Assembly (NCBI GenBank): GCA_021613535.1
Contig: CP075496.1
Location: forward strand, 4,526,001-4,590,000
DNA: 64,000 nucleotides
Direction: 5' to 3'
Source: Adineta vaga
Lineage: Eukaryota > Animalia > Rotifera
Shown here: positions 44,701-48,788 of the stretch, piece after piece
Layout of the letters: each line of letters opens with the position of its first letter
How positions within the stretch are numbered: position 1 is the stretch's first letter
The notes under the pieces: generated by a model
Seen by the model: the letters and a program-made list of their open reading frames with translations, nothing else
Database searches by the model: none
Told to the model about the DNA's origin: nothing
Translations under genes and position numbers: made by a program

Positions 44701-45468
44701 ACCAGTATGAGAATCTAATGATGTCATCGAATCACACTTGAAAGATCAAATACGTGAAAAATATTCGAAACAGAATAGCTTTTCCAAGAGAATTAATTTC
44801 GATCGCTATGGTAATATAAAATAGAACTAATCCATTTGATTTATTGGCTTTATTCATTTACGAATCCTTGACCACCCTTAGTTAAGGATAAGGACAGAGA
44901 GAGAGAGAGAGAAAGAGAAAAGACGCGCGTATTCACAGATGGGGGGCGACATCAGTCTAGTAAACGAGAGGGAGTAAGTAGCGGTCAAGTTGAAGTGACG
45001 CCAGAGAATAATTATAAGGAAAGAGGAGGAGGAAAGAGAAGGTATTATTAAAGTAGCTTTTCTGTTGCCAGACGACGCATGCGTGCGAAAAGTTGACCTC
45101 CAGGATAGGAAAAGGAAAGAAACGAAAAGTGAATGGTATCCACGCCATGAAGCTGATAGAGAGGCGACCTCTCTCTTTCTCCATGTTTTTGTCTTCCTCT
45201 CATGTTCAATACAATATCCGATCATATCAAGAGAGAAAGCGAGCGAGAGACACGAAGAGAAAAGGAAAGAGAACACAATTATAGATTGTTTCTCTCGTCG
45301 TCCACAAACATAAATTAGAGAGTAGTGACCCTCAATCAGTCATTCTATCAAAAACACGATTGCTTATCGGACACGACACTTTTCCTCTTCCTTGTATCGT
45401 TCACGAGCGACACATTGACATTTCGATACATTACACCATCTACACGTGTGAGGCCGCTACTATACCTT

Positions 45469-45973
45469 ATGGCTAATACAATCATTCTTCCCTATACTGT
45501 TATCACAAATCCTCATACGCCTAAACGACGACATTGGCGTCGTTATACAACAACAACAGCTATCTATGCTCATCAAAAACATCAATCTTCATCATCATTG
45601 ACACATTTTGTACATAATTCCACATCTAATCTACCTGATATTGTCAATGATTGTGAAAATCGACAAGAGAATCGAATTCATACAAATTCAGAATTAAAAT
45701 TAACATGCAAAGAAATTGCTCAATCATTGCGACTTGTCGCTGATCAAGTGGATAAAAAATACTGTCAAGTAAGTGTGAAATACTTTTCATTAATCTATTC
45801 ATTTTCTTCTTTTCTTTTCTATTTAGGATGCCGATTTTAATCGAAATCTTCATTATCTATCAATACGCTTTGTATTTCATGCAACACATATGCGAACCAT
45901 ACTTTACGCCTTATGGACACGATCATTTCTACCATTAATTTTACTTGTTTTCAAGACAAAAACATTCTTTTAA
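45469..45973 (+). CDS. Candidate BH3-only pro-apoptotic protein (148 aa, 2 exons; intron 45769-45826)
   Basis: Low-complexity N-terminus, EIAQSLRLVADQVDKKY BH3-like helix, C-terminal hydrophobic-then-basic tail ILYALWTRSFLPLILLVFKTKTFF. Confidence 0.68.
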
Positions 45974-46322: not shown

Positions 46323-47480
46323 TCACATAAGTAAATAACCACACAATACACTTACACCAAATACAGCTAACTGAGCAAGTCGTTTCAATTTATGTCTTCT
46401 TCTCTGAGAATTATCATTAATTTCAAGATGAGTTAGAGAATTGTTCGACAGCATAGAGTCGACTAGTCTTCGTTTCAATTCTATTGAAGAGCTCGATTGT
46501 AAATGGTTATTTTCATTTGATATGGTGTTGGGTAAATATTGTTCGACCGAATTTTGTTTTGTTGTTAATTGAATATTGAAATTAACGGCATGTAGGACGA
46601 CTGGACAAGTCGATGGTGGTAAAGGAAGAAGCTGTGATGTCGAAGGTGTATGAATTGCATTTGTTGATACAGTTTTCAATTGATCTTCGAAAGCATTGAA
46701 AATAATATCAACAATAGGTTGTACCATTTTAACAGCTGCTTCCATAGAATGCGTATTACTGACTAATGATTCGTTGTTTAGTGAGGATGATGAGATTTCA
46801 TGTGGATCTAATTGATTAATATCGATGGTATCATTATCCATAGGTAACGAAGAGTTTAGGAAACGATCAAGAGTAATGATTGAATCATTTGTAGAAAATT
46901 GTAATTGTTTTGTTGAACTCGAATGATCTAAAAGCATGAAATGTTTGATATAATTCGATAATGAGTTCAAAACAGATATACATGTTTGCTGTAAAATATT
47001 ACTATTTCTTGCATTATTTACATTGAGCAAGACATCACGTGTTTTAGTTTGAGATGATCGACTTGTGAGACTTTCACATGAAGATGTTTGATATTTTCTT
47101 TTCTTTTTTTCAATGTTGAGTACGGTGACATGATTATTATTCACATCAGCCATTGTTTGTATCGAAGTGTTTGATATTGATGGACATAAGAAAGCGCTTT
47201 CAGTAGTTGAACTTTCCAAATGTCTTGTGTTTGATTGGATACATTGATGAGTATTATTGAACTTCATCGGATAAGTATAGATGGTTGATTTTTGAAGAGG
47301 TAAAACTACATCTGGATTATCTATTGATGGAATAGATTTCTGATTGGTTTTGAATTCAGTTCGAGATCGTTTCCATGAACGAAGACGTTTACGATATAGA
47401 TCGTTAGGATCTCTACCATCGTTTTGATTCATGTTTGGTTCTGAAGAAAGATGATCTTTTGCATTGGATTTTCGTCCCAT
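46323..47480 (-). CDS. Intronless 385-aa Ser/Thr/Asn-rich orphan with a C-terminal membrane anchor
   Basis: Long uninterrupted ORF; basic clusters RKRLRSWKR and KKKRK; ends RRRHKLKRLAQLAVFGVSVLCGYLLM*. Confidence 0.7.
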   Translation of the reverse strand: MGRKSNAKDHLSSEPNMNQNDGRDPNDLYRKRLRSWKRSRTEFKTNQKSIPSIDNPDVVLPLQKSTIYTYPMKFNNTHQCIQSNTRHLESSTTESAFLCPSISNTSIQTMADVNNNHVTVLNIEKKKRKYQTSSCESLTSRSSQTKTRDVLLNVNNARNSNILQQTCISVLNSLSNYIKHFMLLDHSSSTKQLQFSTNDSIITLDRFLNSSLPMDNDTIDINQLDPHEISSSSLNNESLVSNTHSMEAAVKMVQPIVDIIFNAFEDQLKTVSTNAIHTPSTSQLLPLPPSTCPVVLHAVNFNIQLTTKQNSVEQYLPNTISNENNHLQSSSSIELKRRLVDSMLSNNSLTHLEINDNSQRRRHKLKRLAQLAVFGVSVLCGYLLM

Positions 47481-47706: not shown

Positions 47707-48788
47707 TCAATGTTGAACCATACTGCGTTCGATTCCTTTGCTTTGCCAATGACGTGCATGTTCAAAGCCATTTTGACATAATTGATAATCTTGCATAGCT
47801 TGTCGAATTTCTAGAAGAACGAAATAGAAATGAGAAATAATTTCTTTCAATTAATAAAAGGATAATATAATTACCTTCTTGAGTATTCATTACAAATGGA
47901 CCGCGTTGAACAATAGGTTCGTTAAGTGGTTGTCCAGCAATAAGAACAAATCGACACTCAGTACTATTACTTGTATTTCGAAAATCAAGTCCATCACCAT
48001 TTTGTGATAAGATAAGTACATGATGTGCATCAGCAGATTGTTTTTTCGAACCAAATTCACCTTGTCCACTAAGGATATAAACAAATGCATTCCATCCTTT
48101 TGGTATTTCTTGAGTAAATAATGGTGAATGAGGTTTAAGTGTAAAATCGAGATACATTGTTGGTGTACGAGTATAAACAGGAGATTTTACTGACATTGAT
48201 TCACCGGCACTAAATTAGACAACAAGTAAAATTATCATTTCAATCTTAGATCAATGGAAATACATACATAATTTTTACTTGAACTAAACCATCGGGTGTT
48301 GCTGTGCGTGGAATGTCTTTATCAAGTAATTCTTGATAATTAGGTTCAACCATTTTATATTTTTTACTGAGATTCACCCATAATTGAAGACCATGGCCTT
48401 CTCCCGAACCAACACCTGGCATTTCACAATGGACGATACCACGACCAGCAGTCATCCATTGTAGATCGCCTGGATTAATTACACCTCGTCGTCCAGTAAA
48501 ATCTTCGTGTTCTGTACTTCCTTGTAACATATAAGTTACAGTCTCGAAGCCTCGATGTGGATGATCAGGAAAACCTGCCGGTGCTGATAATCGAAATTCA
48601 TCGAGCATGAGAAAAGGATCGAAGTTTTGTACCTATGAAAATTTATCAATAAATATTCATATGAAAAGAACAAGAAAATTTAATTTGTGTCTACATACTT
48701 GTGAAGTTCCAATCGATCGACGTACTCGTGCTCCAACACCTTCACTTTGTTCAATGCTAAGAATCTTCTTTTCAATGTAACGTGTCAT
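47707..48788 (-). CDS. PIR: Pirin (bicupin iron protein), 4 exons
   Basis: EQSEGVGARVRRSIG, DPFLMLDEF, GFPDHPHRGFETVTY, GDLQWMTAGRGIVHCEMP, GLQLWVNL, FVLIAGQPLNEPIVQRGPFVMNT. Confidence 0.96.

Follow-up and report, generated by a model that had tools for sequence, protein, structure and literature searches.

The BH3-only proteins start mitochondrial apoptosis and are nearly invisible to homology searches; to our knowledge, only a few invertebrate lineages are recorded as having them. EGL-1 of C. elegans and the candidates from schistosomes and Hydra are alike in being small and lineage-confined, with nothing but the BH3 recognizable in them. BID carries an Asp-containing caspase-8 site upstream of its BH3, and in Bim the BH3 is followed by a hydrophobic C-terminal segment containing an arginine. 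The bdelloid rotifers are animals that survive desiccation and very high doses of radiation. A review of the evolution of the Bcl-2 family counts the bdelloid Adineta vaga among the animals that have Bcl-2 proteins but gives no BH3-only protein from it; it further holds that lineage-restricted BH3-only proteins are not findable across the protostome branches by sequence search (PMC8998228). Our own search of the literature found no paper describing a rotifer BH3-only protein.

The gene considered here lies in a window of 64,000 nucleotides—i.e., the whole stretch of DNA that was analyzed—corresponding to C4:4526001-4590000 of the A. vaga assembly (100.8 Mb in 6 contigs, C4 being a chromosome). 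It occupies positions 45469-45973 of the window on the forward strand and has two exons (coordinates without a contig name are those of the window). The first exon (45469..45768, +) opens with the ATG at 45469 and provides 100 codons for residues 1-100, which comprise a disordered basic N-terminus, an LPDIVNDC motif and a BH3-like helix. A phase-0 intron of 58 nt (45769..45826, +; GTAAGT..TTTAG) separates it from the second exon (45827..45973, +), whose 48 codons encode residues 101-148, with a DxxFNRxLxxLSIR linker and a C-terminal hydrophobic tail, and are followed by the TAA stop at 45971-45973. The exons were delimited by translation and by the corresponding exons of an ohnolog on C1, together with the alignment in the case of exon 2. 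Searches of the spliced model were run exon by exon, the whole-protein steps used a database record (P0001), and the exons were joined only in the local codon alignment of the ohnologs that served for dN/dS. The 148-aa product is 100% identical to that record, the deposited A. vaga hypothetical protein I4U23_018519, which has the same exon model; hence, the gene, which the sequence-only reading had taken to be unannotated, was already on deposit. In other respects the translation of both exons bears that reading out, as it had placed a 148-aa protein, a BH3-like motif and a tail at these positions. A frame of 171 codons in the ORF list (45325-45840) was set aside as an artefact of the open upstream frame and of read-through into the intron.

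In the definition of PMC9171138, a BH3 has four hydrophobic positions, HP1-HP4, of which HP2 is an invariant Leu; HP1 and HP3 are each followed by a small residue, and HP3 and HP4 have an acidic residue between them. I4U23_018519 supplies all of these, with I83 as HP1, the small A84, L87 as HP2, V90 as HP3, the small A91, the acidic D92 and V94 as HP4, so that the core I83-V94 falls at 45715-45750 (+). The core had earlier been quoted as 45715-45762; the motif is indeed there, but this interval spans I83-Y98, and the 17-mer written out with it (EIAQSLRLVADQVDKKY, residues 82-98) begins one codon earlier, at 45712. Around the core runs a conserved amphipathic helix, C80-Q100 (45706..45768, +), marked out by the ohnolog comparison (dN 0.06 vs. 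dS 0.82), by a predicted helix at 74-99 and by profile matches to the BID BH3 in the PDB; the most amphipathic 18-mer of the protein is residues 79-96. A second conserved motif, LPDIVNDC (residues 55-62; 45631..45654, +), precedes it, with a short predicted helix at 58-65. Toward the C-terminus lies a hydrophobic segment presumed to be a tail anchor (residues 124-142; 45896..45952, +), which, as the best 19-residue Kyte-Doolittle window, reaches a marginal 1.73 against the usual threshold of 1.6 and has an internal Arg (R132) and a basic flank (K143 and K145).

The AlphaFold2 model built with the family alignment, which is of low confidence (mean pLDDT 50), has residues 1-57 disordered, followed by helices at 58-65, 74-99 and 106-147, without a bundle of the Bcl-2 type. 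The earlier description of the protein as largely low-complexity is loosely worded: residues 1-57 are predicted to be disordered, and are basic and rich in S/T/P/N/H/Q, whereas helices are predicted at 74-99 and 106-147. Pfam searches of both exons and of 12 family members matched nothing meaningful, with no BH1, BH2, BH4 or Bcl-2 fold domain.

BH3 patterns have been described as being of little predictive value (PMC9171138), and a census of the A. vaga genome agrees. A loose pattern, [FLIMV]-[AG]-x-x-[LF]-x-x-[FLIMV]-[AG]-D-x-[FLIMV], written as DNA, is matched once in the window, where 0.06 matches are expected and 6 of 100 shuffled versions contain one; genome-wide it has 111 matches, compared with 92 for the reversed control. 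In 100 of the 111 contexts, 17 have stop codons, and ~20 other open frames carry BH3-like 12-mers. Thus, the motif alone is no more than chance would give, and its significance comes from conservation and context. The census did recover its positive controls, namely, the BH3s of both BAX-like loci of the genome (IAQRLRMIGDEL and IAYRLRLIGDQL), which lie ~110 bp and ~240 bp upstream of the respective BH1-BH2 matches. A prospective third relative, LAQSLLQVADQV at C5:12359975, sits in a frame of 34 codons that ends right after the motif and was judged to be a chance match. Another BH3-like 12-mer, IAQRLQALGDDI, was seen in a short open frame at C2:10993263-10993296 (L049). The chance-level frequency of the loose motif and the lack of any Pfam match both lend weight to a different reading of the gene, wherein it encodes a lineage-specific tail-anchored protein whose helix binds a partner without a Bcl-2 fold—e.g., as a membrane-trafficking, organelle-dynamics or regulatory micro-protein—and its resemblance to a BH3 is coincidental.

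In the A. vaga genome, each exon finds a second locus, C1:8069481-8069882 (-), with 50% and 60% identity and a like two-exon layout; this is the ohnolog I4U23_002578. A word-based search collected 49 relatives, all the named ones being bdelloid (A. steineri, A. ricciae, Rotaria socialis, R. sordida and Rotaria sp.) and the rest coming from environmental assemblies, while a word search with a profile of the superfamily gave 135 matches in bdelloid genomes and metagenomes, every named one again bdelloid. An exhaustive profile search of 1.84 billion representatives returned 15 matches, all of them bdelloid-type family members; it found no relatives outside the bdelloids, and neither of these two profile searches linked the family to monogononts or other animals. 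The order of the BH3-like gene, a ~390-aa gene (-) and a Pirin gene (-) is common to the window, R. socialis and the locus of a divergent member (P0057). The Pirin gene of the window (47762-48608, -), with Pirin and Pirin_C domains in two ORF pieces, is a syntenic marker that is also present at the Rotaria locus and on L012. Between it and the BH3-like gene in the window is a 385-aa Ser/Asn-rich ORF (46323-47480, -), whose C-terminus is basic and then hydrophobic, as in a tail anchor, and which has no Pfam match; R. socialis has a 397-aa gene in the matching position beside its BH3-like gene.

The intron is found at the same codon boundary in the C1 ohnolog, in the A and B copies of Rotaria and in a divergent environmental contig of 40% GC (L011). 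It is precisely missing from a B-type copy (L015 3001-3366) on an environmental bdelloid scaffold of 36.8 kb with B-copy neighbors, where the ORF runs straight over the junction at which the exons of the other copies are predicted to meet. The splice model is thereby confirmed, as the intronless ORF reproduces the predicted junction exactly. Introns that vanish precisely are usually explained by way of reverse-transcribed mRNA, and the loss in L015 may be taken as indirect evidence of a spliced transcript. These comparisons also bear on the possibility that the frame is spurious, or the model mis-annotated, and does not code for a protein. Such a reading might appeal to its shortness, to the lack of a Pfam domain and to the absence of the gene from the examined part of the expression tables of PMC10809525. 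However, the two exons, the intron phase and the frame recur in ohnologs and in different genera, at a near-saturated dS and with a dN/dS of 0.07 in the helix; the intron sequence has diverged between the ohnologs while the exons have been kept; the intronless ortholog reproduces the exon junction; and more than 130 related proteins exist in bdelloid genomes and metagenomes. By these conservation data, the spurious-frame reading is essentially excluded, and I4U23_018519 is, as judged from its sequence relatives, a real and conserved gene.

Purifying selection is concentrated on the BH3-like helix, and the N-terminus drifts freely. Between the ohnologs, for which the overall coding dS is ~0.86, i.e., near saturation, residues 77-101 with the helix have a dN of 0.06 and a dS of 0.82 (dN/dS ~0.07), followed by residues 53-64 with LPDIVNDC (dN 0.13, dS 0.76; dN/dS 0.17) and by the linker and tail, residues 102-148 (dN 0.29, dS 0.99), whereas in the N-terminus (residues 1-52) and the spacer (residues 65-76) dN is at least as high as dS. 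The same picture emerges across the family of I4U23_018519 and its ohnolog (hereafter family 1), wherein constraint is strongest on the helix and 59 of the 60 sequences compared carry the signature C/S-K-[EQ]-[IV]-[AG]-x-[SA]-L-R-x-V-A-D-[QHE]-[VMI]-[DE]. The lone exception, P0059, is a 51-aa fragment from which the first half of this helix is missing. P0060 (VGRSLRQVADEID), which has diverged the furthest of the members, has conservative replacements at signature positions (I to V, A to G and V to I), and its non-contact positions vary freely. The sequence-only reading had staked itself on the motif being kept in orthologs, and both the 59 sequences and the ohnolog ratio show that it has been. 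Constraint is also visible elsewhere, as the tail residues LWTR..L..L..K.K are invariant across family 1, and the L, P, D and D of an LPD[IL]xxD motif are invariant in 17 sequences drawn from both this family and the one described next.

The genome-wide census also led to a second pair of genes, with matches at C1:3488238 and C4:10788416 lying in small two-exon genes. These are I4U23_001036 (104 aa; C1:3488072-3488441, L024 835-1204) and I4U23_020601 (138 aa; C4:10788157-10788637, L091 742-1222), which we term family 2 and which are conserved in Adineta and Rotaria. Their layout consists of a conserved N-terminus, which bears an S-P site and a patch of basic residues, then the motif LPDLLNDIF, a spacer, the helix IVNIATxLRKVGDQMDEQLQ, an intron directly after the last Q of that helix, and a short hydrophobic C-terminus, the tails being less hydrophobic than that of I4U23_018519 (Kyte-Doolittle 0.97-1.42 vs. 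1.73). One metagenome protein of this family from JGI (P0066) bears the name 'late competence protein required for DNA uptake (superfamily II DNA/RNA helicase)' and looks like a mis-annotated rotifer gene.

A search of the A. vaga genome with the family-1 profile did not recover family 2, which came to light only through the DNA-pattern census. Directly compared, the two give a BLASTP E of 1e-5; in hhalign the probability is 90% when a profile is set against a sequence and 94.7% (E 5.6e-8) when two profiles are compared, part of this score arising by construction, as family 2 was chosen among ~100 candidates that share the motif. Even with this selection allowed for, the two families are likely to be homologous because they additionally have the LPD[IL]xxD motif and the layout in common. 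Across both, LPD..D, I, A, L, R, V, D, Q, D and the last Q stand in columns that are invariant or nearly so; the V is in every case followed by a small residue (A, G or S), HP4 is occupied by V, M or I, and the R after HP2 and the Q and D flanking HP4 are kept as well. The alignments thus suggest that deep divergence has spared mainly the pattern of BH3 contacts, and on the strength of them I4U23_018519 is one of four bdelloid genes that have a common layout and fall into two families of one ohnolog pair each.

When a joint 29-column helix profile of both families (A6) was run against all 177,635 distinct PDB sequences, in what was the fourth PDB search of that kind, ranks 1-7 were taken by BID BH3 peptides (E 9e-4 to 0.05). 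Lower matches included full-length BID, the designed Bfl-1-binding BH3 peptide dF4, a designed MCL-1 binder and a BAK-type peptide. The family-1 helix profile by itself ranked dF4 fifth, at E 0.02, with a BID peptide reaching E 1, though most PDB matches of this profile and of the single helix were designed coiled coils; the whole-protein profile gave only noise in the PDB (GDNF and complex I subunits, E > 0.3). Feature neighbors in the ESM Atlas, to be treated only as a lead, were clusters of BMF, PXT1, Bim and Bik (scores 0.87-0.79; the first of these has 190 of 256 features in common with the protein), and the structural neighbors of I4U23_018519 in the Atlas were long helical proteins with TM < 0.5.

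These results cut both ways for a partner without a Bcl-2 fold. The numerous designed coiled coils imply that the helix is in part a generic amphipathic one, the Atlas structural neighbors are long helical proteins at TM < 0.5, and the strong conservation of LPDxxxD and of the tail (LWTRxxLP..K.K) is not obviously needed by a simple BH3 ligand. Yet the columns kept across both families are the four hydrophobic positions, the two small ones and the Asp of a BH3, all in register; the joint profile puts BID BH3 peptides first among 177,635 PDB sequences at E 9e-4; the language-model neighbors are BH3-only families; and a helix of ~26 residues is too short for a coiled coil of the SNARE type. On balance, a coincidental resemblance seems to us less likely than a genuine BH3, though it is the strongest of the competing readings.

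As to the known BH3-only proteins, the core of I4U23_018519 aligns position by position with those of Bim (IAQELRRIGDEF), Bmf (IARKLQCIADQF) and Puma (IGAQLRRMADDL), which had been quoted in the sequence-only reading in agreement with the table in PMC9171138; it has 6 of 12 identities to Bim and 6 of 12 to Bmf, with the A-D-Q triplet as in Bmf. Membership in these families could not be demonstrated: the window protein is unmatched above noise by the Pfam models of Bim (Bim_N and Bclx_interact), Bmf and Puma (PF06773/PF08945, PF15185 and PF15826), BMF reaching E 0.13 in one of the 12 members searched, and the nearest solved BH3 by profile is that of BID. What it has in common with Bim is disorder and an Arg-containing hydrophobic C-terminal segment following the BH3, while its sequence differs from Bim and Bmf in having no TQT dynein-light-chain motif.

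The likeness to BID consists in the best PDB match of the joint profile, with I, A, L, V, D and D shared in register by I4U23_018519 and ~10 of 18 helix residues, as counted from alignments, common to family 2. It extends by analogy to the conserved Asp motif 15-25 residues upstream of the BH3, which may be compared with the caspase-8 site of BID. However, BID itself is a ~195-aa globular helical bundle without a C-terminal anchor, whereas I4U23_018519 is largely disordered and predicted to be tail-anchored; neither BID Pfam (PF06393) nor the BID bundle was matched, the similarity being limited to 18 helix residues, and it may be convergent. From EGL-1 and the schistosome and Hydra candidates, the bdelloid proteins differ in adding a predicted tail anchor, the LPDxxxD motif and a set of four genes.

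The LPD[IL]xxD motif lies 15-25 residues before the BH3 in both families and could be a cleavage, docking or autoinhibitory element. The motif departs from the usual form of mammalian caspase sites in its hydrophobic P3 and, in family 2, its bulky P1', and cleavage of the caspase type is best treated as hypothetical because of these atypical positions. Upstream of the coding region of the window gene, three blocks on the forward strand are conserved. U1 (GTTGCCAGAC ... GAAAAGTTGACC; 45061..45098, +), ~380-410 bp before the ATG and presumed to be a promoter element, is kept in the A. vaga ohnologs, in Adineta, in Rotaria and in the divergent L011. U2 (ATTATAGATTGTTTC; ..CTCAATCAGTCATTC..AAAACACGATT; 45264..45369, +) has a TATA-like CATAAAT at 45309-45315, followed by the presumed start region and 5'UTR, and is near-identical over ~100 bp in 7 of the 7 loci aligned despite a coding dS of ~0.86 between the ohnologs. 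U3 (CACCATCTA ... ACGTGTGAGG; 45425..45460, +) is conserved just 5' of the ATG. Taken together, the blocks are nearly identical between the ohnologs and between Adineta and Rotaria, and are present in part in the divergent contig. Such conservation suggests that transcription or the 5'UTR is under strong control, although the parts assigned to the blocks as promoter and UTR are putative. Compared with family 2, the family-1 blocks are not shared, and a by-eye look for p53-, FoxO- and NRF1-like sites in them gave none that was convincing.

Potential partners of a BH3 ligand are present in the genome. A search for Bcl-2 domains found five loci, among them a C5/C2 ohnolog pair of BAX-like genes (E 4e-11, with intact NWGR and GGW) at C5:8869405-8869840 and C2:9733947-9734512 (L006, L007, L043 and L107), whose own BH3s are IAQRLRMIGDEL at C5:8869807 and IAYRLRLIGDQL at C2:9733947. 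A second C5/C2 pair with the Bcl-2 fold resembles A1 and Bcl-xL, and the fifth locus resembles A1 and Mcl-1, making three pro-survival-like loci in total. Set beside the BAX-like BH3s, the candidate (IAQSLRLVADQV) is identical to IAQRLRMIGDEL at 6 of 12 positions and conservative at most of the others; however, the BAX-like BH3s sit in multi-domain proteins of the Bcl-2 fold with BH1 (NWGR) and BH2, which I4U23_018519 does not have. The caspase domain (Peptidase_C14) has 70 exon-level matches in the genome, suggesting a large expansion of caspases. No p53 DNA-binding domain was found in the genome, a weak result, as the control of that search matched nothing anywhere, although one that agrees with PMC10809525. 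That paper, on radiation in A. vaga, reports p53 to be absent and argues that apoptosis is unlikely after the DNA damage caused by radiation or desiccation.

This argument from PMC10809525 favors the possibility that the protein is a genuine BH3 ligand with a non-apoptotic role, i.e., in mitophagy or autophagy, mitochondrial dynamics or calcium control, after the manner of BNIP3/NIX or Beclin, in a eutelic animal. The lack of a p53 domain in our genome search, its control being likewise blank, points the same way, and BH3 motifs with roles in autophagy and mitochondrial fragmentation are listed in PMC9171138. Nevertheless, a BAX-like effector pair has been kept with an intact NWGR and its own BH3, along with a large caspase repertoire; no LIR-type or BNIP3 domain was detected with Pfam; and the closest solved BH3 is that of BID, which is a direct activator. 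We accordingly consider a purely non-apoptotic role to be improbable.

The reading that we prefer, and hold to be somewhat better than an even bet, is that I4U23_018519 is a lineage-specific, predicted tail-anchored BH3-only ligand of the bdelloid Bcl-2-fold proteins. Of the sequence-only reading, the BH3-only nature of the protein has thereby been favored by every sequence-level test that was run—the constraint on the helix, the distant second family, the BID matches in the PDB and the partners in the genome—but membership in the Bim, Bmf or Puma families could not be demonstrated. In the mechanism that we envisage, the tail would fix the protein to a membrane within the cell, in the likeliest case the outer one of the mitochondrion, and helix 74-99 would put I83, L87, V90 and V94 into the hydrophobic groove of a Bcl-2-fold protein, with D92 set against the conserved BH1 arginine. 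As a result, either the pro-survival-like proteins would be neutralized or the BAX-like pair activated, upstream of the expanded set of caspases, with cell death as the probable outcome. Such an activity might be tightly regulated, to judge from the conserved LPDxxxD motif and from the strong conservation of the presumed promoter and 5'UTR. A bolder version, which we regard as speculative and quite unlikely in its entirety, is that the four genes form a bdelloid superfamily of tail-anchored BH3-only proteins wherein LPD[IL]xxD acts as a switch, either for a caspase-type protease or by docking, and which provides a p53-independent trigger of BAX-dependent death comparable to membrane-bound tBID.

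Thus, despite having no detectable p53 and an argued lack of apoptosis after damage (PMC10809525), the bdelloids keep BAX-like and pro-survival-like proteins, many caspases and four constrained candidate ligands. These four genes are the first testable candidates for cell-death triggers in rotifers. If they do bind the Bcl-2-fold proteins, a full three-part Bcl-2 system would exist in Rotifera, and the control of cell death in a damage-tolerant eutelic animal would become testable with named genes, residues (L87 and D92) and partners.
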